Shown: positions 5,135 to 57,200 of the stretch, one piece after another
Layout of the letters: each line of letters begins with the position of its first letter
Position numbering within the stretch: the first letter of the stretch is position 1
Program-made: the position numbers and the translations under genes
From: Neoechinorhynchus agilis
Taxonomy: Eukaryota; Animalia; Acanthocephala
Direction of reading: 5' to 3'
DNA: 64,000 nt
Assembly: GCA_051530055.1 (NCBI GenBank)
Contig: CM121342.1
Location: forward strand, 7,820,691 to 7,884,690
Notes under the pieces: generated by a model
Seen by the model: the letters and a program-made list of their open reading frames with translations, nothing else
Databases searched by the model: none
Told to the model about the DNA's origin: nothing

Positions 5135-5610
5135 TAAAGATAAAATCCATGCGTATGTGGAAGTGGGGAAAATTATATACCCAAAAATCACTTTAATTGA
5201 AATATTTCGTCCAATTACGCTGGACGTCTTGAGTCAATTATCTGAAAAGGAATTCGGCAACCTCATTGTCTCATCAGGAAGTATCCTCAACTTTAGGGGA
5301 AGAAACAGGACACGAACTCCGATGTTTTTTCCCACTCTTTGACTACGGGCCAAAAGATCGATATTAACGACGCATATTTGTTGGTACGCAATGACCATAA
5401 GGTTGAACGTGTTATTATCGAGGCCATGTTCATTCAGGGAACTAATACTTTCGAGGGAAACAAGATAGATTATTGCCTAAAGTTGAGGATACCTCCGGAT
5501 AAGACATTGAGGTTGCCAAATTAATTTTTAAATAATTGACTGAAGAAGTCCGGTGTGATTGGACGAAATATTTCAATTAAAGTCATTCTTGGGTATATAA
5601 TTTTTCCCAC
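5135..5610 (+). mobile_element. 5'-truncated Penelope-like insertion: inverted arms around a GIY-YIG C-terminal fragment, 12-bp TSD
   Basis: GCGATAACTTGT occurs at 5123-5134 and 5611-5622, and is single-copy in the uninterrupted LINE copy near 38.62 kb. Inverted arms at about 5163-5297 and 5477-5610. ORF 5339-5524 (IDINDAYLL...ERVIIEAMFI) resembles a PLE GIY-YIG end. Confidence 0.8.
5534..5578 (+). ncRNA. Minimal type I hammerhead ribozyme
   Basis: AATTGA-CTGAAGA-A-GTCC(GGTGTGATT)GGAC-GAA-ATAT-T-TCAATT: perfect 6-bp stem I, intact core, palindromic ATAT stem III. Predicted cleavage after 5572. Confidence 0.8.
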
Positions 5611-7232
5611 GCGATAACTTGTCTTTGAGAAGTGAAGGAAGGCGAGAACATTTTTCGATGATTTTTGAAAGAGTGAGCAGAATGGAAATTGGACGGAATG
5701 ATTCGGCCAAAATAGGATGCCCATTTTTCGGAAGAAGGATAACTTTAGCAGTTTTGAGCCCTGAGGGGGAGATGTCATATAAAAAGCTGAGGTTTATAAT
5801 GATGGTGAGAGGGCCTATCAGTTCGGGGATGATGTAGTGAAGGGACCAGTTTGGGATTTCGGATTGAGAGGACGAATTTCAAAGTAATTTCTTGAGATAT
5901 TGGAGGACTTGACTCTTCTGAATACATTTCTTTTATCTCTGCTCCTTCCGGCCAATCATCTGAAGGTCTAATTTCTGTATTCAACACATCGCGCAATCCA
6001 TCTCTAATATCTACATTCATTTCGAATGAACTGTCCTATTCTCTATTTAAATTTTTCTTCAATCGCCGGCATTTCACTGTTGCCAATCTGTACATACAAC
6101 CCGGTTTCATTCATCGTCCAGCCATTAAGAATATTGTGAAATGGCTTCCCAAACCAACATTGATTTTATTGCTGGCAATTTCAATGACCCTTCGACGAAA
6201 TGAACCAATATGAGCTTTCTTCATCTCTTACATCGTCTTAGCATAATATACCGAAAAACGCCCATTCATTCTTAGACCTTATTATGCATAGAAAATATTT
6301 AAAATTTTTACTTCAAATAGAGCGACAGGTGTATTTCTTTAACCTAGCTGGCCACGATGCTTTAATATGGTCCATCGGAAGTAACAGTACTTTAAGGAGA
6401 GTTATACACTTGTCCCCTCTAAACATTGCTCTGTTCAGATCAGTTAACCAATTACTTCTATCGCGGAATTATTTAACCAATAATTTGAATTATGCCCTTC
6501 CTCAAATTAGTTGTTTCATCAATAATACAGCTAAGCTGTTTCTCTACCAAGCACAGAGGGTTTTCTAGACCTTATAAAAGTAGACCATTTCGTTTTATTA
6601 GGCGTCAACTGTATCAAGCAAAATAATACGGAAACGATCTTCTTATAAAAGTGCTTTCTAGGCTATATTGGGCAGCTCGCTGTAGACAACAAATGGCGTT
6701 CGACGGCGCTTTTTTGAATCTTTAAACCCTTTCTCTTCGAAGTGGTGGAATATGATTTTGAAGAAAAAATTTATCAATTGGAAATCGAAGCTTTCCTCTT
6801 GGCTAAAAACCTCCACTTTGGACCAGATACTAACTTCTATCTTTGTTTTTAGGCACCCAAACGACCTTCGCCCGATCTCCCTGTAGAATCTACGAACGGG
6901 ATCAAGCGCATAAACTCAATCTTTTTGTCACGGAGCACAATTAATCTGTCCGTTCAGCGTTGGTAGCGATGCTCCATGCCGTGTTCCTCATAGCCTAATT
7001 GCCAGGATTCACACTACGCTTTTCTCGAAATCCTTTTATTACGACGACGATGATGTCGCCAAGACCTTATTTTACCCTGTTAACGGAGTTCCGCAAGGAT
7101 CGCCGTTCTCTCCTACTCTATTCCTTCTAGCATTTCAATACACGGTACAAAACATTCCTTTTAATGCTAGCTTTTGTGATAAAATCTCTGAGCAAATACG
7201 ATGAAACTCTCAATCGAACAGTCCATGGAGTA

Positions 7233-7445
7233 GGTTGTTTTTGGCGTACAAATTAAAATGATTTTATTTTTAAAATCCGATATTTCGGCACAATCTTGTG
7301 CTTTATCAAGGTTGTAAGTTTTAAATATTTGAAGCAACCTTGATAAAGGCACACAATTGTGCCGAAATATCGCATATAAAAAATTAAATCATTTTAATTT
7401 CTACGCCAGAAAACAACCAATATGAACTATTCAATCTTCAAACAA
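7233..7445. mobile_element. 213-bp foldback element with hammerhead-like arms, 11-bp TSD and one-sided tail
   Basis: TCCATGGAGTA at 7222-7232 and 7446-7456. Inverted arms at about 7233-7315 and 7335-7418, then a 27-nt tail at 7419-7445. Confidence 0.85.
7338..7373 (+). ncRNA. Minimal hammerhead, U3-A8 core variant
   Basis: CC-TTGATAA-A-GGCAC(ACAATT)GTGCC-GAA-ATAT-C-GC. The mirror arm at 7277-7311 (-) also has TTGATAA. Confidence 0.6.
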
Positions 7446-7898
7446 TCCATGGAGTATCTAAACACTTTACTGCCTCACATGAACCTTTGTTTTAATTTAG
7501 CAAAAACAAAATGTATCATCCGGCTCAATGCGTATACGCAGAGATCTTAAAATATTCCTTTCTAAACTTTTATCCAACAACTCTCAGTCCTTACTGATTA
7601 ATTCTTTTATACACTACAATTCACGTATCCTCGGGCACACGATTACAATGAATTTATCCCCTAGGACAGGCATTTCCAAAATGTATAAATTGAGGCTGAG
7701 TTCTCTGGAAGCCTGGTTTTTTATTCTAGAGATCGCCTTCCCGAACACAAGCAAGTATTTATCCAAGCGTTTTTCAATCAAATTAATTCGTTGCCACAAG
7801 CTTGGGCTCGATTTCTGAAAGATTTTTGCCTGCAACGGTGCGATCGATGGACATCTAACATACAAATCTGATAAAGACACCTGATTGCGAACCGTTTC

Positions 7899-10800
7899 AT
7901 GCGCAATTTTCGTTGTAACGAAAAAAGCGTTGTTTCTGGTGATTTCCTTTCGAGACCTCCCGATCATCCTGATGATCGTGCAGGTTTGGATGTCGGTGGT
8001 TCGCTAAGCTGTAACAACTTGCGAATTCCAATGTCCTTGGAGAAGCGAGAGCAGTTGCGCTCTGATCTCGAGCATCAATCTCAAGTCCTGGTAAACAATT
8101 CCCAGTTGACATCGACAAAGCAACAATTTCCAAAATACTCTACCGACAAAAGGACGGCCTTTCATAGCCATTTTTAAATCCAAACCTATCCTACCCAAAC
8201 AAATCATGTACGACCAAGCAGTAAGTCCGTGGACTCGGACCTTCAAGAACGATGGTATTAAAAGGATCGATCACATGACATATTACGCCGGCACCCTACG
8301 AATCTACCTGACTTCACACAATTGGTTGGATCACTTTGTCAAGTTTTCGAAATCTAACCTCCCTAAAGAAGTCTACGATATTACGTCCAGTTCTCAAAAA
8401 GTTCAATTTCTGGTTAAAGGTGTTGAACCTTCTCTCAGCAAACAAGAACGGAACGAGTTCGAACAAACTTTTGGATGCAATATAAAGTTCTAAACTCAAG
8501 AAGGACGGGCCAACCTATTCCTATTGCCATGGTAGAAGGACAATGGAATGTGCGTGATGACTTATGTTCTCAACAATTTTGCTCCTTCAACTGCTTCGAA
8601 ATTAACTTCGTGATGAAATAAAACTATGAGCAAGATGATTTCATCTTTCCGCAATGCAATATCTGTCAGCATTGGGGCCATTGGTGCCAACGCTGCCCCA
8701 ATCCTTCTCACAAAAAATGTTGTCACTGTGGGGATTCCTCTCACAGTTCGGATCAATGTACCAGTTCAAATAAACATTGCCCAAATTGTCAAGGACAGCA
8801 TTCGCCTTTTTACAAAGGATGCCCAGAATTCAAAAATTACTGGGCCTGGGCTCAGAATTCTCTTATTAACGCCGTGGAAAAAGCTCATTACTACAACTAA
8901 GCAAGTAGCGCCTAAACTCAATTCATTGCTTCCAACACCCTCCTTTCGACAAGACGCCAACTCTAACTTCTCAGGATTTTCCGGTAAAGTGCCCTCTACT
9001 CACGTGGTAACCATGGAGCTGCTAGAGAGCAAATTAGATGAAGCTTATAACAAGATTCTAATGATTATGCAAGCTCGTTTTACGGAGGCAATGTTGGCTT
9101 TTGAAACAAAGATGAGCGTCTTAATTGATAAGTTAATGAACATTCCGACTATTTTTTCCCCGTGTTTACCAGAACAAAGCTCTACAACACTCAAAAGAGC
9201 GAATGTGTCTGGAGGGGTTGCACGAGCAGCCAAAAAGCCGAATGGTGGCTCTCGCTCACAGCACGAGGATGATGTTGTGATGGATGAAGATCAATCAACT
9301 TCTGAATTCGTTGCAAGAATAATTGAAACCCAATCCAGGCTGATCGACAACGGAACAGCCAATTTGATTTCAAATGCCAATGCGAAGAAACTTTGACTCG
9401 ATGGCTCAGGAGAAGCTAGGCAATGTTAAGGTGTTGCAGTGGAACTGTGGGGGTGCGACCAACCTTTTTAAGCTCACTCGATATTTACCAGGAATATCCA
9501 TAGCTCTCTTTCAAGAGTCAAAAAGCGTTTTTAATTTAGAGCAACTATATGTTCATCTACCCCTTTTAAAGTCTTCGGTTTTTACATCTTTCGTTCATCC
9601 TCCCTATGGACTTGCCACACAAAGCCTAATTTCCATTTTTCAATCTTCCCTTGTTTCCTCACTGATCATGTCCTATTCCTCTGAGGAATTGTCTTACAGT
9701 ATTTTTAAAATACTTTTCAAAAAGAACTATCTCTCTTTTGCGAATATTTACATAAGACCAGGTCTCATTCATCGTTCGCATGTAAAAGACAAAATCAAAT
9801 GGCTCCTAGGGGCTAACATCGATCTCATTGTGGGAGATTTTAATGATCCATCCTTGAAATGGTCTCGGGCCATTGTTAACGCTGTCAATCTTTCCCATTC
9901 TCTTATCATGCCTAACAATCCTTCCTTTCACAATATTTCTACCAACAAACACTTCTTTTTAGATCTAGTAATATTGAAGAAAATTTTAAACCTTTCAATC
10001 GAATATGATCGCCAAGTCTCCAATTTTGTCCTCTTAGGACACGACATCTTGATTTGGTCCATTGGTCCCTTTGACAGGCTGCGCAAAGTGTATCACTTAT
10101 CCCCTTTAAATTTAGCGTTTTTTCGGCTAGTTTGCTAGAAAATTTTCTTACACCTAGGTTCTGATTGCAAATTGTCAGATATTTTACCTTTAGCAAACTC
10201 TTTAATTAATAAAGCCGCTAATCCTTTCTTATGCCACACCGTTAAAACCTTCTCTCGCCCTTATGTGAGCCGATCACTTCGTTTTCTTGGACGCCAACTC
10301 TATGTAGCCCAACGCTCTGCGGATACCCTTCTATGCAAAACCCTATCAAGCCTTCTATGGGCTGCCCGTTGCCGACAGCGACAACGAGGGGATGCTGATT
10401 TTCTTGCTACACTCAAACCTTACTCTTCAAACTGGTGGCGTACCTTTTCTAATAAGGGTAAAGTACCTTGGAGATAAAAATTACGGCTTGGTGAAAATCC
10501 TCGACTTTGGAGGATATTCTTACTCAAACTTTTGACTTCCATTCCGCAGGCTCCTCGACCAACGTGCCGTCAATTTGTTTTCGTAAACTAATACGTAATC
10601 GTACTGATATCTAATTAAATGACATTCTCCAAGTTTGGTCCACAAATCCGAAATTGGGCTCGGCTAACGGCTACCCCGGGACGAAAATTTTCACCTTGCT
10701 TCCAAGGGACTGCATAATCCTCCTTGCAAAGGCTATGCTGTGCTGTTCGCCATACGCGTGGTGGGATATCAATGTTTCTAGACGCATTTTCTTGGTCAAA

Positions 10801-11820
10801 AATGGCGGGAAGGCTATTGTAGAACCAAAGGATGTTCGTCCAATATCACTTCAAAATCCTCTAGTTAGCATATATGAACGCGCCCATGCAAATAGGTTGA
10901 GATCTTTCATTCATGAACATTATTGCATCTCTCCGAACTGTCATGGCTTTCTAAAAGGGAAATCAGTTCATTCTGCCCTTGCAGAGGTTTACTCCAATTT
11001 TTCCTGCTCTAACCATCCCACGAGACCCATTCTTGCCGTGAACATTTCTCAAGCTTTTGATAAGATTTCTTTTATTATTGAAATGCTTGAATTTTTCAGT
11101 CTACCTCACAATTTAATTACACGTGCCCACAATATTTTATTTACAAAATCTTTTTACTACGAAGACGACGCCTCAATGACACTTTACTACCCGTCCAATG
11201 GTGTTCCGCAGGGGTCACCTCTGTCACCAATTCTTTTCCTTATGGCATCACAATACTTGATTCAGAATTTTAAAGTTCGGGCCTCGCTCACCTGCTACGC
11301 GGATGATTTTACTTTTGTCATCTCCACCCACAAAGCAGCTAGAATGAAACTCCTGATTGAGCAATGTATTGATTTTCTTAACTCCTTTTTACCTAAAATG
11401 AACTTATCGTTGAATAAGTCGAAATGTTTATGCATTTTTAAAGTTCGCTCAAGCAAAATTAGGAAAGATTTAATCCTTTTTCAACAATTTAGTGAACAAC
11501 CCTGACACCTCTTCTTCAGGTTTTACGAATACACCCCTTAAAATTAAAATATTGGGTCACACCTTTACTGCTTATCTCTCGCCTAGATTAGATTTGAATA
11601 AAATAAAAAAATGCTCACTTTAGCATCGAAAAAGACGAAGCGCGCCGTTACTCTCGGGTTAAACGCTAATCAATGCCAAACTATTTACAAAAGCTGGAGC
11701 ATTCCTGGCCTGGTCTTTTTCTCTCGAGGTCGCCCCCCGGAACAAAAGGCTTTACTCATCAAAATGTTCCGCGAAAACCTTAATACCCTGTCTTTCTCCT
11801 GGGATGGCAGAACGTTTTGA
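7899..11820 (+). mobile_element. I/Jockey-group LINE, near full length, frameshifted (ORF1 with three CCHC knuckles; ORF2 APE + RT)
   Basis: About 8645-8830 translates CNICQHWGHWCQRC, CCHCGDSSHSSDQC and CPNCQGQHSPFYKGC. APE at 9374-10138 (LQWNCGG, VGDFND). RT at 10654-11505 (RPISL, GVPQGSPLSP, YADD). Confidence 0.9.
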
Positions 11821-11956
11821 TGAGTAAAGCCTTTTGTTCCGGGGGGGCGACCTCGAGAGAAAAAGACCAGGCCAGGAATGCTCCAGCTTTTGTAAATAGT
11901 TTGGCATTGATTAGCGTTTAACCCGAGAGCAACGGCGCGCTTCGTCTTTTCCGATG
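11624..11956. repeat. Long near-perfect inverted repeat at the LINE 3' end (~146-bp arms, 40-nt loop)
   Basis: 11624-11769 is the reverse complement of 11810-11956 with only a few mismatches. Confidence 0.95.
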
Positions 11957-12031
11957 TTATGGTCTAGTTGAACGATACTGATTAGTTGTTTTGGTTTTTC
12001 CTCTCATACTGCCACATGGTGAATAAATCTG

Positions 12032-12056: not shown

Positions 12057-15000
12057 GCGATCCGCTACACTGAATAATCTTTTATTGTTGTTGAAAGTTA
12101 CATAACATGGATCCTATGGACGATTGACCGATCTGAACCTTTTTGTTCGCTTAGTCGGCTAAAGTGGACCACACGAAGCGTAGTCCGCCAAACATCAATG
12201 TTTTAAAAGCTGAACGGCATTTATAAAACTCATCACGTTTTCAAACTAGAAAATATTTATATCTCAGACTAAGACGCAGCGATGATGTTAGACCTATCCA
12301 TAAAAAAAGACACGAAACTCCCAGGAAAGCGCAGTCATAACGAAAGGCATGAAACTTCCTCCTGGGATTTTTTCTAAAATCGGATTACCGTGTGCTTCTG
12401 GACAGAACTCCCGCACAATATTCCCAACAAATGACATTTCATTTGAACTGGCGATGTCGTGATTGGCGTTTGATGTTCATTATCAATGGATCTTGATGAT
12501 AAACCAGAACCGCCGCAGCGTGAATTACGGAGTTCATGGACCCTGAGAACTCCTGTATTCGTCAGGACCAAAGCGTCGAATCGTACCAATATTCAATACA
12601 TCGTGTTTGGAATTGTTTTCCATTTTAATTGCATTGTTCAGTCTCCCATTTCGTGATTTGCTTTTTCCGATGAATTCACCTTTATTTGGTATGGAGCTCC
12701 GAGAATTCTTCACTCTAAACTTTTCTTATATGCCGACAATGTCACAATCTTCACAAAATCACCCTAAACATCTAACGATGTCATCTACATCAAAGATTTC
12801 TGCACTAATCCAATACTCTACCTGAACTTCTATAAATGCTTCGATTTGATCTCCTCACTCTCCCGCATCCAACGAGCCACCTCCCTCAGAATTCTGGGTC
12901 TCCAATTAAAATCAAATCTGAAATGAGACTACCACATTTCCTCGAAGGCCGAATTTGATCGGAATTCTTTTGACAAGTTAAGCTAGAAATCTAAAACGGA
13001 GAATCACGATTAATGTCCTGCTGCCATTTGCACCCCAATGCTTAAGGAGATGACCGAGATGGTATCCGCGGGTTCTGGGTAGTGAAATGACTGAGACTTG
13101 ATGGGATATTTTATTTTAGCCTAATTTATAATGAACAAAAACCCTCGTCCATTGAAGAAGTTGCTTATGACAAAAAGCTTAATTAAAATTCTATAGACCC
13201 TTTCATTAGTAAGCAGGTAAGAAAAACTAATTTTTATTGTTGTCAAAACTATTTTAAATTCCAACAGCTAATAAATCTAAAATCCCGGGTAATAATGTCT
13301 CGTCCATTTTAGTCGGATAAAATTTCTTCAATGTAATACCGAATCTATATTATGTTATTGTATAATTTTTCCCGGTATAGGTGAGGTCGATAGATTTTCT
13401 TGATCTTTTTCTGAAATCTTCCATTTTTAAGAGGAGTCCTTTTCGCAGCTGCCATTTCGCTAGCTGTTTCAGGCTTGACGTCCAGCTTAGTGTCTACGAC
13501 GACGGCATCTGTTTGTCCCTCGATCTCAAATTTTAGTTCGATTGATTCGATTGGTGCAATTTCGCTCGCGAACTGGGACTTGGCATCTTCTTTATTGCCA
13601 ACGCCGACGGCATCCTTTTCTAATTCAATCTGAGATATGAGTTCGATTGACTCGATCGCCGCCATTTCGCTGGCTGATTCGGACTTAACATTACCTTTAA
13701 TGTCCACGGCGACGGCATCGATTTCTTCTTCAATCTGAGATTTGAGTTCGGATAATGCGACTGTTACAATTTCGTTGGCAGATTTAGACTTTACATCCTC
13801 TTTAGTGTCAACGGCATCGATTTCTCCATCAATCTGTGATTTGAACTCGGTTGATTCGATTGATACCATTTCGTTGGCAGATTCATACTTGGCACCACCT
13901 TTAGTGTCCACGGCGACGGCATCGATTTCTTCGTCAATCTCAGATTTGAGTTCGATTGATTCGATTGCAGCCAATTCGCTTGCAGATTCGGACTTGACGC
14001 CCACTTTAGGGTCCTCGGCGACGGCATCGATTTCTTCTTCAATGTGAGATTTGAGTTCCATTGACTCGATTAATGCCATTTCGCTGACAGATTCGGACTT
14101 GACATCCTCTTTAGGGTCAACCGCGATGTCATCGATTTCTTCTTCAATCTGAGATTTGAGTTCCATTGATTCGATTGCAGCCATTTCGCTTGGAGATTTG
14201 GACACGGATCCTTCTTTAGGGTCCTCGGCGACTTCATCGATTTCTTTAATCTGAGATTTGAGGTCGGTTGATTCGATTGCTACCATTACGTTGGCAGATT
14301 CACACTTGGCATCCTCTTTAGTGTCCACGGCGATGGCATCGATTTCTTCTTCAATCTGAGATTTTAGTTCGTTTGATTCGATTGCTGCCGTTTCGCTGGC
14401 AGATTCGGACTTGACGTCCTCTTTAGTGTCAACGGCGATGGCATCGATTTCTTCTTCAATCTGAGATTTGAGTTCCATTGATTCGAATGCTGCCATCTCG
14501 GTTGCAGACTCGGGCTCAACATCCTCTTCGGTGTCCGCGGCGAAGGCATCCTTTTCTCTTTCAATCTGAGATTTGAGTTCGATTGATTCGATTGCGGCTG
14601 TTTCGCTTGCACATTCGGACTTGGAATCCTCTTTAGTGTCAACGGCATCGTTTTCTCCTTTATTTTCAGCCGGATTATATGTAAATGGCAATTTTGAATC
14701 AATATTCAACAATATGCTATTGTATGAAATTTTCCGGTATAGGTCAGGTCGACACATTTTGTTAATCTTGTTTTGAAATTTTCCTTCATTAAGAGAAGTC
14801 TTTTGCGTATTTCCTTTTCTGTCGGTTAATATCCTTGCACTGTCTTCGAATGGTATCGTTTCTGAAGAGCCGATTGCGGAGTTGTTGGACCGCCCTGAGG
14901 CAACAGGCATTTCCATTTTATTCACCATTTCAATTGTCTCAAATGCGCCAGGTATAGGCGTTCCAAGTTTGAGTTTTGTGGAGTTACTTTCTTTTTTAAC

Positions 15001-17367: not shown

Positions 17368-17625
17368 TTGACAAAACAGTTAGACGTGGCCACAAGCCAG
17401 ACATTTCGAAAATTGACGAGGTGAGAAGCCATCAGTGATTGGTTTTTGAATTGTGAAAGAGAACCCAAATAAGCGAATCCTAATAGTAGGACCACCTTTT
17501 GAGGTGGCCATGTCAATGAGAGCTTTAACCAACAAACCAAATATTGGCAAATCACTATTGGAAAGATATTTAATGGGAGTGAATCCGTACTCCTTTTTCG
17601 TTTCAAGAAAATCTTTTCTGGGCAT
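17368..17625 (-). mobile_element. LINE ORF1-like fragment with degenerate zinc knuckle; second copy at 27042-27534
   Basis: FSPRQFSKCLACGHV*LFC. Shared upstream of paralogues B and C. Confidence 0.5.
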
Positions 17626-33633: not shown

Positions 33634-33775
33634 TTATTGTTTAGAGGTCTTCACCCGGTAAAGAGTTTATTAAAGACGTTCTGTGAACGTCGTCGGGTCT
33701 TCTATTAATAACTAACAAACTGATAAAAAATTATTTACAGGGTAAAGACTTCTAAACAAACTCACCATATCGACA
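33634..33775. mobile_element. Decayed member of the 27.1 kb foldback family
   Basis: Shares TTATTGTTTAG..GTCT...GGTAAA...TTTATTAAAGACGTT and the CATATCGACA end. Confidence 0.7.
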
Positions 33776-44800: not shown

Positions 44801-47348
44801 CTCGCCCTTTCTCCATATGTCCATATAGACAAAAGCGTTATCACAAGAGAGTCCAATAAGAAGGAACGTTCCAGCCATGTTGATATATGGAAACAATTCA
44901 ACCTGAAGGATTACCCGGTAGACGGTGTAAGCACACGACATGGACAATCCAACATTTAGTACAGTGACCAAACAAATAAATAGGTTTCCAGTGTAGATCA
45001 TTGAGACCGTTAGAGTGAGAAACACAGCTAGAGCCGTAAAGTACATGTCGTTCTTGACCTGTTGCATCGCAATGTATAAACGACTATGTGCCATGTTGAC
45101 GGCCGTCAATCGTAGAATTCGATGTTTGAGTGATGCTGAGTTTTTCTTGAGCCATTTTGTAATGGTAGTGAAATGAACATAACTTTGGTGATGAGCTGAT
45201 TTTTGAGCTTCACTTTGTTGAAACGGCATAGACTCATAAATAAGAGACAACTCTGCTCCACTGATTTCAAGTTTCGGAGTAATCCAAATGGATGCGATCC
45301 ATGCGCTGGAGGCATTCATAACAGTGAAATACTCAAGCGATTCGTAAATGGACGTATGAAAACAGGCTGATTGGCACATTTGTTGGTGCTGAAGATACAG
45401 TGCGCTTTCGGCTACGAGTTGTGGAATAATTGTTCGGTACAGACCTAGACATGATTTTAGAAGATTAACAAAACTATCGATCTGCTCGTCTGTTAGATTC
45501 GAACAATGAGTGTTAAAGTATCTAGCAGCTCCGGTTGCTACACTTCTCGGTCCTTCGGATTCTATGCTCGAATTCCCAAGTACTGCCATTAAATCGCTTC
45601 CATATTCACATATTGATCTTATTAAAGTAGCAACGCTAATGCCTCCTTTAGGTACTGGTTCAAAATACAGCTGATACGATCGCCCTAAATGAGAAAATCG
45701 GTAGTCTCGGTGCACAATCATAAATCAGAAGAGACAAATGGATTGAACGACGATCGTGCTTTTTTTTAAATCTTACAACGAATCAAAAACCTTTATTCGT
45801 AGATGAAAATAAGAACGACAATGGAGAACTAAACATATAGCTCACGATGATTCAGGGAAAAGGGTGTAAAAAAATTAAATATCGGTGTAATGTAACGTGA
45901 ATAATAGTAAAAGGGTTCAGTAAAATTGCATATTTGTAACATGAGACACTCCTGTAAAAATCATTTCAACTGAACTTGAGTAACAGCTTTTATTCGATAA
46001 AAGGCTTATGGTGTATTTGCAAATCAAATTAATTGAAGTTTATTGACAGACTCCAAAAATTAATAAACTAATAAAATCCATTAGATAGGAGTCGGTAATT
46101 GTTATTTAGATATAACAAAGGGTTTAGAAAACCTTTCAAATTCTGACCCGATTAAGCAAAAGCACACGATGTCAACTGCATTTATGACCATTTGTCTTGT
46201 TTCCAAAATAAAAAAAGTTGTGATAATTCCCAAATTCACTATTTCTCTCGTTTTCCTTCAAAATATATTGTTGTCCCTAGTAAGAATACGGATTTCTCCA
46301 GAATAAACTCTTCTATATAAAATACTGCACATTTTCTGTGTCTGCAATGTTTCTTTGCCAACCTAACATATTTTTTGTCTTTATCCTTAGTTTTTAGCAT
46401 ATTTGAGTATTGTTGAAAAAAGACCTATAATCCTGATTTCTGTGTGAGCTTAATCTTTTTATGCCTGGGTGCGGGAATTCCGATTAAGAACCACTACATT
46501 AAAAGTTCCGTTATAATCTACTTTGAAATGCAACTAAAAAAACCTTTAAAGCAAAATTATCTAATTGCTTTAAAGCGAACCATGACATTTAAAATGAAAT
46601 TTTCAAATATAATCTAAATTAAATGGTAAAAAATGGTTCATCAAATAAACTCACTTAGGTCAAGAGGATATTGTGATTGGTTGCTAATACTTGCGCCGGT
46701 TCTTTGTTCCGCAATTGAATTCGTTGGAACAAGATTAAGCAGATCTGGTAGCATCATTGCACAATATTTGTTAGCATTAGAGGAGTTCATCATTATGATG
46801 ATATCTGTAGTTGGAAGCGCTGAATTCTCATTAAATCCCAAAGCACAATCGTGAAGAAGATTGTTGATCGGTCCTTTTTCTGAACAAACTTCCGACGAAG
46901 GCATAGTATTGGTATGCGCAGAAACTTGTGCAATGCCCAAATCATTAAACACTCTGTTCTTGATTTCGATGAAGACTAACATCTTCCCGGTCATCGTATC
47001 GTTGCCATCAGCGTAGAATCCCTACACGAACAGTAGTTACAAGAGTGTTTAAAAAGAAAGCTTATACTTTCGCTGGATCGGAAAAGTCAGGTAGTTGATA
47101 AAGAGCCAGTCCGCATACTCCAGTTGTAAGAGCAAAACCAAGAACGATCGATACAACAATCCAAGGATGACCGGTTATTAACCGGCTATATCTAAAAAAA
47201 TTTAGTTAAAAAAGACGTTTGCTTACCAACAAAAGAATACGTACGCTAGATTTACAGTTCGCTCAATACAGCATAGTCTAGATGCTATTTTTCGGTTAAT
47301 ATCGAGAACCGTTGATCTACTCGTGGGTTCATCTCCATGCTTAGTCAT
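41823..47348 (-). CDS. DISP1: Dispatched-family sterol-sensing/RND membrane protein (multi-exon; exact structure unresolved around 44.3-44.8 and 42.5-43.2 kb)
   Basis: TM1 followed by LPDFSDP; FPYINMAGTFLLIGLSCDNAFV; RHATAALFATSATTAAAF; AVGLSVDFTVHYG; FSQMGLFLMIIM. Short GT-AG introns. Confidence 0.9.
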
Positions 47349-47889: not shown

Positions 47890-48260
47890 ACAACCTTGAT
47901 AAACGCGTACAAGATTGTGCCTCCGAAATCAATCGGATTTTAAAAATAAAATCATTTTTATAATTTTGGTGAAAATATACTCCGCCGGCCATAACCTATA
48001 TTTGATTTATAGGGGAAATATTTCGCAGAGGAGGTAACCTTGCCTCATCCATCAGTCATTGTTGGTGAGTTTTAGATGAGGCAAGGTTACCTCCTATGCG
48101 AAATATCTCAAATCAAAATCAAATATAGGTTATGACCGGCGGATTATTTTCACCAAAATTATAAACTTTGACTAACCCGAAGGATTTTCTCCAGCGATGA
48201 AAATCATTTTAATTTCCACGCGCCAGAAAACAACCTATATGAACAATTCAATCTTCAAAC
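47890..48260. mobile_element. Nested foldback elements: a 241-bp element (47959-48199, TSD AAAATCATTTT) inside an arm of the 7.2 kb family
   Basis: TSD at 47948-47958 and 48200-48210. Inner arms at about 47959-48047 and 48075-48163, plus a 36-nt tail. The outer element has CCTTGATAA at 47894-47902 and the same tail as 7419-7445. Confidence 0.8.
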
Positions 48261-50134
48261 ATCTGATGTAGCCATTGAAACAAAAATGTTTCGGGATAAA
48301 ATGCATTGTACTGAAATAATCAGTCATCTAAAAAGGATTTGAGTTATTGGGTACGCGGAATCGCCATTACCGATAGTCAGGGACCGTATAAGAAAACAAT
48401 GCTTCCTCTTTAGAAAAATTTCAATCTAATGAAATACGTTTTATCCGGGATCTGACGAGGTTCGCGAAACGTCTTGAATAAACTTAAGTACTCACATAGG
48501 TAGATTTTCCAACGCATTTTATTCCTTTCTTTTGGAAATTACTGATCCATCAGGCTTGTGGCATCAGATTCACATGAGCACAACAATCGCAATCCCAACT
48601 GCTTTCATCCCACCAAAAATTACAAATTTAAATTAAGTCGTTCGGTTCACCTTTTTTCTCCTATGATGAACGTTAACTTTAATAATTCCAATCACATTCC
48701 CCGCGGTACCTCCTCAAATATCGACATCTCTACAAAATAACTAAAAAAATCCGTGTTGCAGAATTCAATATCGAAATTCTTGATCTTTTTTATCTCCCTC
48801 AGCTTCGATCTGTCGAATTTCGAAAACATATCACCGGAACCATTCAGTTTTCAATGCATTCTACTCTTCTGCCTTATTTAAATAAAAATACAAATTAGAT
48901 CAATTGTCATACACTTAAAAGCTAAGTAGCACTGCAAAAACAATATACGGATCGAGGAGTTTTGCCTTGAGTTGTTCTAAGATGTATTTATGAGACGTAT
49001 AAGCATAAAAAGATGTACTTTTATCTTTTGACATTTTTCTAGCAAACAAAATTCGCTATCAGAAAAACGGCAGCAATGTCCGCTTAAACCAACGAATTAT
49101 GATGTTTTTGAAAATTAATGCGATTGCGTTGTGTAGCAGAAGTGATACCAGTTGAATTTTTTTTAAATAATATTGCTCTAGAAAAGTAAAAGCTATAAAC
49201 ATAAGTTTTGAATGTTCATCCAAGCTCCAATTTGCTTTTTTAGTCTCAATTGTAGCTGTTAATGGAATGATCGTCCGGATACCAAGAGTTTTCCGGCGAA
49301 CTTTGTGCACAGCTATTGACATATTTCTTCAAATCACTGAACATCCGCCGTATTTAATATGCAGAATATTCGGAAATAAAACATTCAAAGATAAAACTAC
49401 ATATTTCTGCGTCGTGTGCTCTCAATCTGTTCGCATTTGGATCAAAAGACATTTGGTTACGTCTTCCATGAAAGCCTAATGATTCCCTATTAACTCCGTT
49501 GCTGGATTCGACAACCTCGAATCAACATCACAGAGTCCTATTAGCTGAATTTATTTCATATACAACCAAACCAGCTTCTAAAAATAGTCCTCACAACCTA
49601 TCTTAAAGATTTGCCTTTGTCAAACCTCAATTATGCGACTTTTTAGGTCACAAATTAGCATATAAATGACAGAAAAATTTGGTAGCATTTCAAACTACTT
49701 TCAATTCGCAAACGACACTTATTTTCTAGGTATATTTTTTCGAAGCTATGGGTTTCCCAAAAAATTAAGATTATTAAAATCCTAAAACAAAAGGCAACCA
49801 ACTAAAAAGCAGTTCTTTAAAAAGCGCCGTAAAATATGATTTTTATTACAGTAAGAAAAGGGAACAATATCATGATTTATTTGCCTTTTACATTAAGACG
49901 GCTTCGATTATCTCATTTTTCTCCAAAGTCAAAGAAATAAGGAGAATTGATTGAAAATATTTAGGTATGCAATAAAAATCTGACGTTAGAGAGATATAAT
50001 AATAAACAATGCAGACGATGCCAATATTAGGATCAATATTATTATTTTGGTCGTTTGTCAATAAACGAGAAAGAGATCGCGTTAAAGAGACGAATGTATA
50101 TATTTCGATTGATTGTAAATCGAAATATATACAT

Positions 50135-50285
50135 TGTCGATATGTGAAGACGAGGTATCGAAGAATTATTGTTTAGAAGTCTTCACCTAATAAAGAGTTT
50201 TCTTAAAAACGTTTATGGTTGATGAACCTGACGAGGTATCGTAGAACGTTTTAAACTCTTTATCGGATGAAGACTTTTAAACAAT
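50135..50285. mobile_element. Decayed member of the 27.1 kb foldback family; further fragments at 39805-39872, 48440-48485 and 50927-51003
   Basis: TGTCGATATGTG end; GATGAACCTGACGAGG; GAAACGTCTT(T/G)AATAAA motifs. Confidence 0.7.
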
Positions 50286-51491
50286 CAGTCGAAATATTCA
50301 TTCGACTTTAATGATCCCTCTCTCTAGACATGATTGTTCGTTCCCGGGTTCCCGAGTCAAAACGAACAATCATGTCTTGTGTTTGTCACAAATGCCTTAG
50401 ATTGAATTTATCAAATGACTCTGATTTAATTAATCGATACATATAAATTCGTCTCTTTAACGCGATCACGTGTAACATTCAGTCAAAATATTGATCAATT
50501 ATTTCTTTTAGTAGACCTTTTCCACTTAAAACACATGAGGTTAGGACACAAATTTATAATTCTTAAAAAGAAGTTCTCATCTTCTCCTCTCGGGTGTCGA
50601 AAAGCGAAAAAAATTACAATATTGGTCCTAACCACACCCGAACGCAATCCTTAATAAGACCAAGATCAATAATTAAAATATTAAGAAAATTCATAAGGTT
50701 TTTTGTTCGATCAAGATGATCACAAGCTGAATCCACGGCAAAGAAAGTGTGCGATAGACCCCAAAAATTGAATTTAGGCAATAATTAACACGTTAAATGA
50801 GAGCCTCAGACATAAAGTACAACTTTTTTTTGGATTAAAGTTTAACATTTATAATATAACGTACCGTCGTCCATTGAGCGGAAATGAAATTTATTAACCT
50901 CGAGAATAATGGCGTTATCCATGTTAGAATTATTGCTTAGGTCTACACCCAGTAAATGAATATTTATTAAAGACGTTCTGCGAACCTCCTCACATATCGA
51001 CATTGTTATCTATATTACTTTCTCCAAAACAATTAAAAAAGGTCAATTAAAGAATTTGAAAATTGCGATCGTCCATCGAATTTTTGTGAAACATGTATAA
51101 GTTTATTTAATTCATTACAAGTATCGAATGCAATAGAATCTCAAAAAGCGAAGAAATCGATATTACGTGTATTAAAGGTTTGAAATGACCAATTGAACAC
51201 AGTGCTTGAATAAACATCTATTGAAAATACAAAACAATTGCTTTAAAGGGAAATGAAGGTGAAGAGATCAATAAAAAATCATGAATTTTAGCGATAACAA
51301 AAAAAGAAACGACGACGTACAGAACCATGGATACTAATGGAGACAAATATGGGACGCGAGCACGCGCGGACACGAATACTACAGCGCAAGTTAATCCGAA
51401 CGAATACAACTTTGAATACAACAACAAACAAAGAAGCGGGTACTCGTCGACACTGTTGAACTGGTCATCATTACAAGACTGATTTTGAGCA

Positions 51492-54031
51492 TGGCAGAGT
51501 TTGTACATTTCTGTAGCTGTAACGAGGTGTCCTAGTGGACCTTCGGTCCCGAATATCTCTTTTTCAACTTCCAATTATCCAATATCCACGATCGCCGATG
51601 ACTCACACGGCCGAAGGAAGGAGGAAACTCACTGATGAATCTCCCGCCTACTCCTCGGGAGGAGGTATCTAAGGATCCGGAGGTATCCGGGTACAAAACT
51701 CATATTCGCATATTGTTCAGGGGAAGTCGTTCAATAACTTCCCTAAAGAAAGATGTCGGTTTTGTTGTGTGACTAAAAGGACAAAGCCGAGAAAGGGATT
51801 CTCACAAAACTTAATTAATATAGCCAACTTGTCAGTAGACATAAGAGAATTGAACACTTAGCCCAAGACAATAAAAGTGGCAGAGTTTGTATATTTCTGT
51901 AGCTGTAACGAAGTGTCCTAGTGGAACTCGGTCCCGAATATCTCTTTTTCAACTTCCAAATATCCAATATATATGATCGCCGATAACTAAAACGGCCGAA
52001 GGTGGGAGGAAACTCACTGATGAATCTCCCGCCTACTCTTCGGGAGGAGGTATCTGAGGATCCGGAGGTATCCGGGTACAAAACTCATATTCACGTGTGG
52101 TTAAGGGAAGTCACTCAATGACTTCCCTAGAGAAAGATATTGGTTTTGTTGTGTGACCAAAAGGACAAAGCCGAGAAAGGAATTCTCACAAAACCTAATT
52201 AATATAGCCAACTTGTCAGTAGACATAAGAGAATTGAACACTTAGCGCAAGACAATAAAACTGGCAGAGTTTGTATATTTCTGTAGCTGTAACGAGGTGT
52301 CCTAGTGGACGTCGGTCCCGAATATCTCTTTTTCAACTTCCAATTATCCAATATCCACGATCGCCGATGACTCACACGGCCGAAGGCAGGAGGAAACTCA
52401 CTGATGAATCTCCCGCCTACTCCTCGGGAGGAGGTATCTAAGGATCCGGAGGTATCCGGGTACAAAACTCATATTCGCATATTGTTCAGGGAAGTCGTTC
52501 AATAACTTCCCTAAAGAAAGATATCGGTTTTGTTGTGTGACTAAAATAACAAAGCCGAGAAAGGATTCTCACAAAAACTTAATTAATATAGCCAACTTGT
52601 CAGTAGACATAAGAGAATTGAACACTTAGCCCAAGACAATAAAAGTGGCAGAGTTTGTATATTTCTGTAGCTGTAACGAGGTGTCCTAGTGGACGTCGGT
52701 CCCGAATATCTCTTTTTCAACTTCCAATTATCCAATATCCACGATCGCCGATGACTCACACGGCCAGTGGGAGGAAACTCGCAGTGAATCTCGCCTACTC
52801 CTCGGGAGGAGGTATCTAAGGATCCGGAGGTATCCGGGTACAAAACTCATATTCGCATATTGTTCAGGGAAGTCGTTCAATAACTTCCCTAAAGAAGATA
52901 TCGGTTTTGTTGTGTGACTAAAAGGACAAAGCGAAGGTTACTCACAAACTTAATTAATATAGCCAACTTGTCAGTAGACATAAGAGAATTGAACACTTAG
53001 CCCAAGACAATAAAAGTGGCAGAGTTTGTATATTTCTGTAGCTGTAACGATGTTTCCTAGTGGACCTCGGTCCCGAATATCTCTTTTTCAACTTCCAATT
53101 ATCCAATATCCACGATAGCCGATGACTCACACGGCCGAAGGTAGGAGGAAACTCACTGATGAATCTCCCGCCTACTCCTCGGGAGGAGGTATCTGAGGAT
53201 CCGGGGGTATCCGGGTACAAAACTCATATTCAGGTGTGGTTAAGGGAAGTCGTTCAATCACTTCCCTAAAGAAAGATATCGGTTTTGTTGTGTGACCAAA
53301 AGGACAAAGCCGAGAAAGGGATTCTCACAAAACTTAATTTATACAGCCAACTTTTCAGTAGACATAAGAGAATTGAACACTTAGCCCAAGACAATAAAAC
53401 TGGCAGAGTTTGTATATTTCTGTAGCTGTAACGATGTTTCCTAGTGGACCTCGGTCCCGAATATCTCTTTTTCAACTTGCAATTATCCAACATCAACGAT
53501 CGCCGATGACTCACACGGTTGAAGGTAGGAGGAAACTCACTGATGAATCTGACGCCTACTCCTCGGGAGGAGGTATCTGAGGATCCGGAGGTATCCGGGT
53601 ACAAAACTCATATTCACGTGTGGTTAAGGGAAGTCGTTCAATCACTTCCCTAAAGCAAGATATCGGTTTGGTTGTGTGACGAAAATGTGAAAGCCGAGAA
53701 AGGGATTCTCACAAAACTTAATTAATATAGCCAACTTTTCAGCAGACATAAGAGAATTGAACACTTAGCCCAAGACAATAAAAGTGGCAGAGTTTGTATA
53801 TTTCTGTAGCTGTAACGATGTTTCCTAGTGGACCTCGGTCCCGAATATCTCTTTTTCAACTTCCAATTATCCAATTATACGATCGCCGATGACTAACACG
53901 GCCGAAGGTAGGAGGAAACTCACTGATGAATCTCCCGCCTACTCCTCGGGAGGAGGTATCTAAGGATCCGGAGGTATCCGGGTACAAAACTCATATTCGC
54001 ATATTGTTCAGGGAAGTCGTTCAATAACTTC
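51492..54031. repeat. Tandem array, ~384-bp unit, about 6.6 copies
   Basis: TGGCAGAGTTTG recurs at 51492, 51878, 52262, 52646, 53017, 53401 and 53785. Confidence 0.97.
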
Positions 54032-54267
54032 TCAGATAGCCGTGTGTGGATGATAACTTCAGCACTTAGAATAAATATATTAGCGGCTAGTCAGACTTCA
54101 AAAAATAAAATAATACGAGGATAATTGTCGGCAAGTTGAGAAACTGAAATGAACGACACATTGATGAAATCATGAAGACGCGTATAAGTATTTGAATGAA
54201 CGACAAATGGGCGAGAGTACACACCATGCTGCTATTTAAAAAACAGTCGCTTCATTTTATGGCGATA

Positions 54268-57200
54268 TCAAATCAGGGGGAACATTTTCTTTTTAGAAGT
54301 TCTGTTTCGCCGTTTTCGACCGCGTTGGCATTCAATCTCAATTTCATCAGTACTCGTAGATTTAATAGAACCGTGAGCCTTTGGTGTACCTTTCTTCTTT
54401 TTGCTTACGATCAAATTAATTCCGGCAATAGCTTGCAATACACTCTCGTATTCACTTGAATCCGATGATCCGTAGTTTTGGTTCAATACTGAACAATCGT
54501 TGCAACATTTTTCACTACTCCTTGTATTCGTTCGTACTGCTCGCGATGTGTACTTCATTGATTTCTTTTTAAACGTCAAAACGTTTTTGTCGTTAAACTG
54601 GCTAACACTTGAGGTGCTGGACTTTGTTTTTCTTCTGATCGTATCACCGGATTTCAAATCGTAGAAAAACGCTACAGGCTTTCTTGGTAAAATACATTTA
54701 CCTTTGAATGTGATTGATCGTCGGGCTGCTATCCTCATGAGACTAAAAAATTATTTGAAAATGGAAGTTATTGAGACCGCACTACCTATCGCAGTATTTT
54801 AAGCAATTTTCAGTATAGTCAACACAGCTTTGACCATCAACTACGTTGATCATAAATATCGAGCTGACATTACCGCAAAGTGCGTCTCTTAGAACCATTG
54901 ATACTTTGCTTTGTCGATAGGGAATATGACTGGAGCCATTATCGAGTTTTCGAATACATTCCTTAAGCTAGAAATTGGATTATATCAATTCGTGAACAAT
55001 CGGGAAGCAAAATGGGCCTATCTGGTTTTATTTAAAATGGGTTTTTCTTATCACTAATTTAAGATCAATATTTGAAGAAAAAGATACACAGTGGACGAAA
55101 AGCAAGAGACTATTGAGGGTGGACGTAACTAATTGTGTAATTCAATTGTACCCTTACACGAGTATTTGTAAAAATAAAATGCAAGCCATTTTCGAGCAAT
55201 AAAGCTTTGACTTTGACGCGAATCACTTCTTCACATTGTGATGAAACTTTAAAACAATTTTCAATAAACTTAATTGATTCACTTCTTTTTTTGTTGGAAT
55301 TTTCGGTTTGTAGGATCCGACAAATATTCGATTTAAACTAACTAACTGTTTAAAGAATCAGTGTCAAATTTTTTTGATTTCAACTGTCATCAGTACGAAC
55401 ACTGTGGCAATTTATCTTGACTTACAGCTAATAAACTGGAGTTGATTGCCGGAGTTGCCGAGTCATCGTGCCCTATAGGAACATTTAATCTGTCGATACC
55501 CCGTTCACTCCCGGCTAAATCGATAAATGTCAATCTAAAATATTCTTCATGAAACTTTATTGACGGTGTAAATTTCCTTACCCATGAGTTGCGTTTGTAT
55601 TCTTATCGATTCCTCGCATTTGTATAATCACGTGTGATCGAGATGATTGATTGTTCTTAGAGCTTTTATTTGTAGTTCGATACTTTAAACCTTCGTCCAG
55701 CAACTAAATTATTATTACATATGAACGGCGGTTTACAATGTGGGATCTGGTAACAAAAACCGAACGATTCCAGATTATACGTTCTAGTCGAAAATCAAAT
55801 GTTGACTTTACAGAAACAAATGAACTAGGCCTGCTCGGAATAAAGTATTAAAAGAGAACGGTTTCGGTTTCGTCTAAACAAATTTTGTCTTTAGAATGAG
55901 AATTTGTTCGGTATTAGTGGTTCCTGGCCTAGCTTTGAACGAAAGTTAACCTCTGTTTTGAAAGAAGAATTTAAAAGTAATCATATTTGTAATGTCCTTT
56001 TACAGATGAACGATTCAAGATATGCACAGTTTTAACCAAAAAATCAATGCAGGTTACGTTTACATCCAGTAAATAATTATTTCGATTAAAAACATTTCGG
56101 CGAACCTTGTCGGGTTCATCATCAGTTCTACTCATCCATTTGTATTTTAGAACTGATGATGAACCCGACAAGACTAGCAGAAATGTTCATCACATATCGA
56201 CATTTAATCTTTATTATACGTTGGCGAATCTTGTGCCCGATGTTATCGATACCTATTAATTGCGAAATATTTCACAAGGTTTTCCTTGCTTCCGTGAAAG
56301 CAATAACGACTGAAAAAGCAAGGAAATCCTTGTGAAATATTTCGCAATTAATGAGTATCGATAACACCGGACATAGGATTCGCCAACGTACAATCAAATT
56401 TACCCCGAGGACTTGTATACTTTTTTTAAAAAAAAAGAAAAACCATTACAAATTCGTGTTTTCTTCGACATTAAAGTTGCCCAATTCCATCTGAAACCTT
56501 TAAATAAAACTCTGGCTTATTACTACGGATGAAAAATATAAAAAGGCTAATCAATTTTCGTTTTGCAATACCGAACCATTTGAAGTTTTTTGACCGAATC
56601 GATGACGCCGGTAGTGATATTAAGTATCCTTATAGATCCGTTCGCGTCCTCCAATGCAGTTAACCTGTTTAAATATTAATTTTTTTGTGACGGCGCTAAT
56701 AAAAATGTACAAAATTTTTTAATTCTAACGGTTTCTTTAAATTAAGCAAGTCATATAAAACATTATCAAATATTTCATAGACATTGCAATTGACAACATC
56801 ATAATTGTCCATCATGTCGCCAAAGGAGAAATGAACAAGGCCTCGTTCTTTTTCTGAGCCAAATAAAGTAAAAGTTTTTCCGCTGCCAGTTTGTCCAAAG
56901 CAAACGAAAATTAACTCCCTACGCTGACGAGAAATCAAAAAGTAAGCAATGGACACACAACTCACTCATTCTTTTCTTTTCTCAAAATGAAAGGTCCAAT
57001 CGTTTGCTTGTAAAGAGTGTAATTATCGATAGTTTGATCGAAGACTTGATGACATTTGTGACGTAACTTTAGACTCATTATGGCTCGTGTGTGGTTTAAT
57101 GGATTAAAACCTTTTCGTGGTATCCACGTTCCAATATTATAATCGAATCATCGCCAACTATTCGGATTGCCACATTATCCGCAACATTAAGATATCCAGG

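Follow-up and report, generated by a model that had tools for sequence, protein, structure and literature searches.

A 64-kb stretch of the acanthocephalan Neoechinorhynchus agilis (GenBank assembly GCA_051530055.1, contig CM121342.1, positions 7,820,691 to 7,884,690 of the forward strand; "the window" below means this whole stretch of 64,000 nucleotides) holds about 14 micro-insertions of the Penelope type, which belong to about six families and are only 110-480 bp in size. The palindromic ones consist of two inverted arms, each with a minimal hammerhead ribozyme motif in an intact or decayed state. Very probably, every palindrome was left behind by a single abortive integration of a Penelope-like element (PLE), in which no coding body was copied. 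The elements are insertions, with target-site duplications of variable length, one-sided tails, a hammerhead motif with covariation and a geometry as in a characterised PLE; the enzyme responsible and the way the arms were joined are what we infer. All searches for arms, open reading frames (ORFs) and hammerheads covered the 64-kb window, unless stated otherwise.

Foldback elements and their insertion sites

An unbiased inverted-repeat search recovered all nine palindromes listed in the preliminary description of this DNA, which had been made from the sequence alone. The arms found by this search were 36-135 nt long and 83-95% complementary, with spacers of 7-178 nt. Close inverted 14-mers occurred in 15 of the 500-nt bins of the window, compared with 1.5 bins in dinucleotide shuffles. 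Comparison of the arms with the whole window by blastn added five copies which the count of about nine had missed: foldbacks at 20.8 and 50.2 kb, single arms at 39.8 and 47.9/48.2 kb, and a lopsided copy at 50.9 kb (Table 1).

Three empty sites within the window mean that the elements are insertions. The 5 kb element (5135-5610, an insert of 476 bp) interrupts the reverse transcriptase (RT) region of a Gypsy-like copy, and a paralogous Gypsy-like copy holds the 12-mer GCGATAACTTGT only once, at 38618-38629, without the insert. The 8-mer which flanks the 27 kb element (27113-27339) is present once, also without the insert, at 17431-17438 in a duplicated segment. For the 48 kb element (47957-48199), the empty site is given by a family B arm, which is split at the 9-mer AAAATCATT.

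The lengths of the duplications were 8, 9, 9, 12, 12 and 13 bp, and none of them was TA or TTAA. In every resolved case one arm was flush with the duplication, and the other arm was followed by a tail of 25-34 unmatched nt. From the centre outward, each arm reads 5' to 3', and the sense strand of the hammerhead runs outward on each side. The preliminary description had already claimed target-site duplications with one flush arm and a tail on the opposite side, and this was borne out, with duplications of 8-13 bp, three of them verified by empty sites.

The target of the 5 kb foldback is the first of three decayed copies of one Gypsy-type retrotransposon (3145-6035, 21.3-24.2 kb and 37.0-39.7 kb), which show RT and RNase H matches. 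The RT fragment of the copy at 3145-6035 also gave a weak match to Pfam RdRP_1, overlapping the RT match.

Minimal hammerhead motif in the arms

Hammerhead positions are numbered here with the core C3-U4-G5-A6-N7-G8-A9, then G12-A13-A14, and H17 before stem I. Reading outward, the order in the arms was stem I, CUGANGA, one base, stem II, GAA, one of the 4-mers AUAU, ACGU or AAUU, H, and stem I. This layout agreed with the one described earlier and was intact in the right arms of the 5 kb and 32.7 kb elements, where the descriptor gave exactly the cut sites that had been predicted, after 5572 and 32812. The motif at 5540-5572 was UAAUUGA-CUGAAGA-A-GUCC..GGAC-GAA-AUAU-U/UCAAUUA, with 7 bp in stem I; it matched the strict descriptor and scored 41.3 bits with the covariance model.

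Two minimal-hammerhead descriptors were used, a strict one and a relaxed one which allowed one defect. The strict descriptor found 2 sites (5540-5572 and 32781-32812), with 0.005 expected by chance. The relaxed descriptor found 4 sites, with 0.12 expected, and 0 of 200 shuffles reached 4. A covariance model, built from an alignment of 10 arm copies from five groups and run unfiltered over the window, gave 12 sites at E<0.01, all in foldback arms. Among them, ten were the training sites and two were new: 35215-35252 in the left arm of B2 (E = 0.006) and 56088-56128 in A2 (E = 0.0076). The best matches below this threshold fell in other foldback arms, and scattered weak ones lay elsewhere; no convincing match was found outside the foldbacks in the whole window. 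By this check, which the preliminary description had suggested for the whole genome and which here covered the window, the motif is far above chance and confined to the arms.

In the same alignment, where the hammerhead hypothesis guided the choice of both the sequences and the structure and where arms from the same element do not count as independent, 83.5% of stem cells were paired, against 51% in shuffles and 22-45% with slid partners (ten arms, five groups). Seven of the eight pairs of stems I and II were changed on both sides across the five groups, with a covariation score of 0.72 against 0.19 when shuffled (0 of 500 shuffles reached it). Stems I and II appear to have been kept by compensatory substitutions between unrelated groups.

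None of the families had a helix III hairpin, and AUAU, ACGU or AAUU directly followed GAA in all of them. The unpaired base between A9 and position 10.1 (alignment column 11) was always occupied, by A, U or C. The 10.1-11.1 pair (alignment columns 12-28) was G-C in 8 sequences and G-U in 1, so that G-U was limited to one family. Family B (7.2 and 35.2 kb) had UUGAUAA in place of CUGAUGA, which is a U3-A8 covariant. The hammerheads at 33.6, 48.0, 56.1 and 56.2 kb were degenerate.

Minimal hammerheads with an extra base after A9, a G10.1-C11.1 pair and palindromic positions 15.2-16.2 are known from the pseudo-long terminal repeats (pseudo-LTRs) of PLEs, with many families in one genome (Cervera & de la Pena 2014, PMC4209133). 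The same study reported a U3-A8 covariant for the Cercyon elements of Schistosoma, and in 2014 already attributed pairs of minimal hammerheads on opposite strands, 100-700 bp apart, to truncated PLEs. The motifs of the window are structurally no different from these metazoan ones in the core, the unpaired base and G10.1-C11.1. They are also alike in the stem II of 4-7 bp, the short stem I, the palindromic 4-mer replacing helix III, the presence of a U3-A8 family, the many families per genome and the pairs on opposite strands. Published minimal hammerheads cleaved weakly in vitro (PMC4209133) or needed the protein of the element (PMC11167929).

The minimum-energy fold of the 47-mer 5534-5580 was that of the hammerhead, with its stems I and II. 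For two copies, RNAcofold predicted strand-swapped extended stems and not a 4-bp intermolecular helix III, so this prediction has no bearing on the dimer model. The Rfam hammerhead models (Hammerhead_1, Hammerhead_3, HH9, HH10 and II) gave no match in the window even at E<=10. This would be expected, as minimal hammerheads have no helix III, and hence the result is not evidence either way.

A 384-bp tandem array at 51492-54031 (6.6 copies, 92% matches) was considered as a hammerhead or retrozyme array and rejected. Its unit reads CUGAUGA-A-UCUCCCG...CGGGAGG, with a 7-bp stem II, but in every copy AGGUAUC follows instead of the GAAA box.

Families and relationships of the arms

The palindromes had been assigned to about five families without mutual similarity. 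This needs correction, since several of the palindromes belong together. Family A comprises the foldbacks at 27.1, 33.6, 50.2 and 56.1 kb and the copies at 39.8 and 50.9 kb; family B those at 7.2 and 35.2 kb and the single arm at 47.9/48.2 kb; and family C those at 48.0 and 20.8 kb. The elements at 5.1, 32.7 and 56.2 kb are singletons. The hammerhead region is common to the members of family A, and a tail ending in CACATATCGACA to five of them, that is, all except the tail-less arm at 39.8 kb. In family B, B1 and B3 have in common a tail ending in ...CAATCTTCAAAC, of which the 35.2 kb tail is a shortened and diverged version. C2 and the 48 kb element have in common GCGAAATATTTCA, the outer-arm sequence and the tail motif GGATTTTCTC; no target-site duplication was found at C2.

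Several forms occur in family A. The foldbacks at 27.1 and 56.1 kb are symmetric, and that at 50.2 kb has arms of different length and its tail on the opposite side; the 39.8 kb copy is a single arm, and the 50.9 kb copy is lopsided. At 50.2 kb the right arm extends into the CUGAUGA box, and the left one ends near GAA-ACGU. The arm at 50.9 kb begins in stem II, and directly next to it is only a remnant of the tail on the plus strand, its final 15-19 nt (CCTCACATATCGACA). In the right arm of A2, the hammerhead region is joined straight to the tail end (CATCACATATCGACA). The single arm A5 has 91% identity to the left arm of A1. The other single arm, B3, was recognised from blastn matches of B1 to both flanks of the 48 kb foldback, joined across the shared AAAATCATT, and no inverted partner was found upstream of it. 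Within an element of family B or C, the arms were 89% alike, compared with about 70-83% to the arms of sibling elements. These single arms, the lopsided or unequal copies and the pairing of arms by element in B and C favour the view that the inverted pair forms independently at each insertion rather than propagating as a unit, a point which the preliminary description had left undecided.

The two arms of A1 meet between TATT and AATA of a palindrome, and the junction of A4 is at this same palindrome (TATTAATA). The A1 arms (27113-27307) are 95% alike over the inner 60 nt, with about 7 clustered differences in the outer 30 nt. The left arm is the variant of the 39.8 and 50.9 kb copies, and the right arm is the variant of the 33.6 and 50.2 kb copies. 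The A1 arms may not be derived from one template.

Reading frame of family A

An AUG made up of A9, the extra U and G10.1 opens a frame through the variant-1 arms of family A. This ORF starts with MNPTRFETSLINNHLPGVDLSNNS and reads MNP[K/T]RFETSLINNHLPGVDLSNNSD. Of the two arm variants of A1, only the first (left-arm type) keeps the frame open, and the 39.8 and 50.9 kb copies are open in the same frame. Counted in this ORF, the predicted cut site is at nt 26, the tail-less end at nt 77 and the tailed end at nt 109. In five families, the tail-less end lay 38-59 nt from the cut site, and the tailed end 66-93 nt from it.

PAc, a Poseidon-type PLE of Anolis carolinensis and the only such element studied biochemically, has an ORF which begins at stem II, with the cut site 26 bp after the start codon. 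Its enzyme nicks and extends both strands and has two internal starts of reverse transcription, and the sequence between them forms the tail; the position given for the starts is nt 111-118 (Frangieh et al. 2024, PMC11167929). Family A, and only this family, is alike in the start codon at A9 and the start of stem II, in the cut 26 nt into the ORF, and in the distal end (nt 109 vs 111-118). Its tail likewise corresponds to the interval between the two start sites. The two differ in that PAc has no sequence similarity to family A. In the other families, unlike family A, the extra base is A and no ORF begins within the hammerhead. Family A would be a second lineage in which the hammerhead, the start codon and the copy ends are spaced as in PAc. 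A metagenome scan with the family A arm gave no match.

Decay of the hammerheads and folding of the foldbacks

Most copies in the window carry predicted inactivating changes. In the left arm of the 5 kb element the core is CUCAAGA (G5 to C), and in the left arm of the 32.7 kb element C3 is changed to A. The right arm of the 56.2 kb foldback has G8 to A at 56310-56341 (CUGAAAA-A-GCAAGG-AAAU-CCUUGU-GAA-AUAU-U). Both hammerhead copies of B2 (35.2 kb) are changed at position 3 or 4, and those at 27.1 kb have a broken palindrome or a stem II mismatch. The hammerhead of the 48 kb element is degenerate, with U[G/A]GAUGA and a bulged stem II (E = 0.84 and 5.8 with the covariance model).

Differences between the two arms of an element were found at 24/222 positions (10.8%) inside the hammerhead and at 63/459 (13.7%) outside it (p = 0.33). 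Since they are as frequent inside as outside, the hammerhead appears not to be conserved, or under selection, at these loci after insertion. The motif is conserved between families, implying selection in the source elements. That the cores decay as fast as their flanks within loci also speaks against foldbacks which propagate as units.

Folded as RNA, A1 formed a single hairpin of -110.9 kcal/mol (z = -19). By this prediction, a read-through transcript of the whole foldback would lock the ribozyme in the hairpin. The "ribozyme on each strand" of the preliminary description follows from the inverted duplication, as a by-product, and not from design.

Origin of the foldbacks

We propose that the GIY-YIG nuclease of a PLE would nick the two strands 8-13 bp apart, which would give the target-site duplication. 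Within the template RNA there would be two start sites of reverse transcription, separated by 25-34 nt and located 40-90 nt downstream of the hammerhead, and the use of one or the other would produce one tailed and one tail-less end. Copying would pass the hammerhead and stop upstream of it, at a distance of a few nt up to a few tens of nt. The two short copies would be joined head to head, perhaps because both nicked strands serve as primers, or through self-priming at a palindrome. The arms would be short or near-complete pseudo-LTRs, and those of family A would also hold the first 25-36 codons of the ORF. The hammerheads would be passengers, functional in the source elements and not selected at these loci.

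The earlier attribution to PLEs is supported by the minimal PLE-type hammerheads, the variable duplications and the one-sided tails. The earlier idea of a distinct class of non-coding elements was not sustained, for this architecture has already been described for PLE insertions (PMC3846280, PMC8557442, PMC4209133). Arkhipova et al. 2013 reported an inverted 5'-truncated copy next to a pseudo-LTR, with a 31-bp tail on one inverted pseudo-LTR, duplications of 8-10 bp and palindromes at the junction (PMC3846280), and Craig et al. 2021 gave inverted 5'-truncated copies with a tail of 30-40 bp at one end as a general rule for PLEs (PMC8557442). The foldbacks of the window are alike in the head-to-head inverted terminal copies, the frequent extreme 5' truncation, the extension of 25-34 nt at one end, the 8-13 bp duplications and the junction palindrome of family A. 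They differ from these insertions in having no ORF between or beside the inverted copies. Their arms, at 60-135 nt, are also shorter than the pseudo-LTRs of Adineta vaga, which are 181-218 bp.

A likeness to the twin priming of L1 elements is that both nicked strands prime in one integration, and inverted segments lie within one set of duplications. Twin priming, reportedly set out by Ostertag and Kazazian in 2001, is said to invert different parts of one RNA and to duplicate nothing, whereas the window foldbacks carry the same terminal segment twice.

Three observations weigh against abortive PLE integration as described above. Pfam searches of 16 long ORFs and 102 stop-to-stop ORFs revealed no PLE reverse transcriptase or GIY-YIG ORF in the 64-kb window, and every RT match that was located individually fell in LINE-type (long interspersed nuclear element) or Gypsy-type copies; hence the end of a coding element could not be matched with any arm. 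In 8 of 10 foldbacks, the inner arm ends are found about 0-26 nt upstream of the hammerhead. This is unlike random 5' truncation of a multi-kb element, and it requires the extra assumption of whole short pseudo-LTRs or of a preferred stop. The A1 arms match two subfamilies at clustered positions, which is awkward if the arms were identical at birth.

The clustering of inner ends and the junction shared by A1 and A4 suggest one of two things: either each arm is a whole short pseudo-LTR, or joining is mediated by the palindrome, as has been proposed for Adineta. In a more specific model, which we consider rather doubtful, a dimeric enzyme would prime both nicked strands on two RNAs or on one short pseudo-LTR transcript, run to a defined 5' end and join the cDNAs (DNA copies of the RNA) at the terminal palindrome. 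It would fit the clustered inner ends (8/10), the palindrome junction common to two family A copies and the mixed subfamilies of A1, and on this view the foldbacks may directly show how PLEs integrate and not be random debris. If this model is true, no other PLE product in this genome would be as common as such mini-insertions, and they would be a natural record of both start sites of reverse transcription and of where the template's 5' end lies.

Alternative explanations

A self-standing non-autonomous class, in which the whole hairpin unit of about 200 bp is transcribed and recopied repeatedly by the PLE enzyme, seems unlikely to us. It would account for the similar arm size in several families, for the A1 and A4 junctions at the same palindrome, and for 14 insertions in 64 kb with no coding PLE. 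It would also account for the different subfamily variants in the two arms of A1, since differences between arms would look like this if they were inherited. However, the same families are also present as single arms (A5 and B3), A6 sets a 60-nt arm against about 17 nt of tail, and A3 has unequal arms. The closer likeness of arms within elements than between siblings in B and C is also against it. Furthermore, both outer ends are two kinds of PLE 3' end, and not one 5' and one 3' end, and a hairpin RNA of -111 kcal/mol would be a poor template.

Relics of non-LTR retrozymes, which spread as tandem hammerhead repeats via circular RNA, are a very improbable source of the foldbacks. The copies are inverted and not head-to-tail tandem repeats of 170-400 bp, and they end 40-90 nt downstream of the cut site and not at it. 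Although type I hammerheads are present, and animal retrozymes were reported as derived from PLE pseudo-LTRs (bioRxiv 10.64898/2026.07.22.740005), those of the window are minimal forms without helix III, not canonical type I, and had no match to Rfam Hammerhead_1. It is still harder to believe that these are hairpin RNA genes retained by the host (precursors of microRNA or small interfering RNA) or working ribozyme loci. The hairpins are very stable and have sub-threshold Rfam matches to plant microRNA precursors, but these matches are far below the gathering threshold (e.g. 75.9 vs 144 bits) and stem from the hairpin shape alone. Divergence between the arms is 5-16%, with cores changed as often as flanks, and the loci are insertions absent from paralogous copies. 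Miniature inverted-repeat transposable elements (MITEs) of DNA transposons, with terminal inverted repeats which resemble hammerheads by chance, are scarcely credible. The palindromic shape, the small size and the flanking duplications look like MITEs, but the inverted repeat covers the whole element and not just its termini, no Pfam transposase family matched any ORF of the window, and both the hammerhead motif and the covariation in it far exceed chance. The variable length of the duplications, none of them TA or TTAA, and the asymmetric ends produced by the unmatched tail exclude a cut-and-paste MITE, as the preliminary description had held.

Catalogue of the elements

Table 1. Penelope-type micro-insertions in the window (positions of the window; strands in brackets).
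Element	Extent	Arms, inverted-repeat search	Arms, full extent	Tail	Target-site duplication	Hammerheads and remarks
5 kb foldback (singleton)	5135-5610	5163-5297 / 5476-5610	5163-5297 (-), 5476-5610 (+)	28 nt, 5135-5162 (-), outer end of left arm only; right arm flush with duplication	12 bp, GCGATAACTTGT, 5123-5134 and 5611-5622	Left copy 5201-5233; right copy 5540-5572, intact, predicted cut after 5572; left arm 87% complementary to right arm
B1 (7.2 kb foldback)	7220-7456	7238-7304 / 7346-7412	7233-7314 (-), 7335-7418 (+)	25 nt, 7419-7443 (+)	13 bp, one mismatch, A[G/A]TCCATGGAGTA, 7220-7232 and 7444-7456	U3-A8 variant, 7340-7371 (+) and 7279-7309 (-)
C2 (20.8 kb foldback)	20773-20979		about 20773-20865 (-), 20866-20951 (+)	tail-like stretch, 20952-20979		Decayed
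A1 (27.1 kb foldback)	27105-27347	27140-27199 / 27219-27278	27113-27206 (-), 27207-27307 (+)	32 nt, 27308-27339 (+)	8 bp, ATGAGTGA / ATGAGTTA, 27105-27112 and 27340-27347	27162-27193 (-) and 27225-27256 (+), relaxed descriptor matches, one defect each
32.7 kb foldback (singleton)	32662-32895	32676-32757 / 32772-32853	32674-32757 (-), 32772-32853 (+)	about 30 nt, 32854-32883 (+)	12 bp, one mismatch, TTTACA[T/C]CAACT, 32662-32673 and 32884-32895	Right copy 32781-32812 (+), intact, predicted cut after 32812; left copy 32717-32748, C3 to A, stem II broken
A4 (33.6 kb foldback)	33625-33775	33637-33672 / 33724-33759		on right, ends ...CACCATATCGACA		Decayed
B2 (35.2 kb foldback)	35176-35406	35193-35275 / 35287-35369	35176-35275 (-), 35287-35385 (+)	21 nt, 35386-35406	possible, 10 bp, 7/10 positions match	
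A5 (39.8 kb single arm)	39812-39871 (+)			none		Begins within stem II (GGTTCGAAACGTC...); no inverted partner
B3 (single arm with tail)	47890-47956 and 48209-48260 (+)					Split by the 48 kb foldback
C1 (48 kb foldback)	47957-48199	47974-48058 / 48066-48150	47957-48058 (-), 48066-48165 (+)	34 nt, 48166-48199 (+)	9 bp, AAAATCATT, 47948-47956 and 48200-48208	
A3 (50.2 kb foldback)	50136-50296			on left (reverse complement ...CACATATCGACA)	TCGAAATAT...	
A6 (50.9 kb lopsided copy)	50923-51004		60-nt arm (-)		9 bp, one mismatch, GTTATC[C/T]AT, 50914-50922 and 51005-51013	
A2 (56.1 kb foldback)	56043-56203	56091-56130 / 56148-56187	left arm long			GAA region disrupted in both arms
56.2 kb foldback (singleton)	56204-56420	56205-56291 / 56316-56402	56205-56291 (-), 56316-56402 (+)			Abuts A2

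A2 and the 56.2 kb singleton, which are unrelated, adjoin within 0-3 nt (56043-56420). Kinesin exons of the motor domain, on the minus strand at 55.5-56.9 kb, flank this pair, with the P-loop at about 56.9 kb and SSRSH and DLAGSE at about 55.6 kb, and the pair is probably located in a kinesin intron. A homologue search with the kinesin exon gave nothing. A3 sits inside another inverted repeat with arms at 50075-50114 and 50428-50467, which also includes a small palindrome at 50093-50135; the target sequence of A3, TCGAAATAT..., is present three times within 50075-50467.

Other features of the window

The window is eukaryotic DNA with a G+C content of about 40%. There are 2 tRNA genes (Rfam at the gathering threshold), pieces of LINE-type (endonuclease/reverse transcriptase) and Gypsy-type (RT, RNase H, integrase) retrotransposons identified with Pfam, and several tandem arrays.

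A near-perfect palindrome of 339 bp (94%) with G/C runs lies at 11621-11959, directly downstream of a LINE-type RT ORF (10654-11505); it lacks both a hammerhead motif and a clear duplication. The region 61480-64000 has dense tandem units of 91 bp and 203 bp and many short inverted repeats (motif TTGGAATTAACGGATTTT). The 11621-11959 palindrome and the inverted repeats at 62-64 kb were rejected as members of the foldback families, being different kinds of repeats with no hammerhead motif. Sub-threshold matches to microRNA precursors were found on four foldbacks and on the unrelated 11.7 kb palindrome, including 32672-32858, 35223-35338, 7266-7384 and 11728-11851. These permissive Rfam matches, to plant and animal families (e.g. 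MIR2630, 75.9 bits vs a gathering threshold of 144 bits), are artefacts of the hairpin shape.

Long ORFs made of 105-nt (35-aa) tandem repeats are present at 13345-15822 (-), 17800-19710 (+) and 27709-29652 (+), with no Pfam match. The second and third of them are within a segmental duplication (about 17.4-20.5 and 27.3-30.4 kb), whose copies are 90-97% identical. Two adjoining long ORFs of 376 and 440 codons, with many hydrophobic stretches, lie at 43192-45724 (-). They may be the source of a weak Pfam Patched match which was seen in the pooled ORF scan. No homologue of either was found in a search of 5.8 billion proteins, so the host lineage seems to be poorly sampled.

Significance

The window adds nothing categorically new to biology. 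Its novelty is limited to the unannotated families, a second hammerhead and ORF-start geometry of the PAc type, and hints on how the arms are joined. For annotation, hairpin and MITE finders and scans for microRNA precursors will mislabel such loci, and Rfam hammerhead models miss them; the microRNA-like artefact matches could mislead automated annotation. A minimal-hammerhead descriptor or covariance model, together with the signature of tail and duplication, classifies these loci as Penelope-derived. Collected genome-wide, such scars could map the starts of reverse transcription and the 5' ends of the templates for many PLE families with no experiment.

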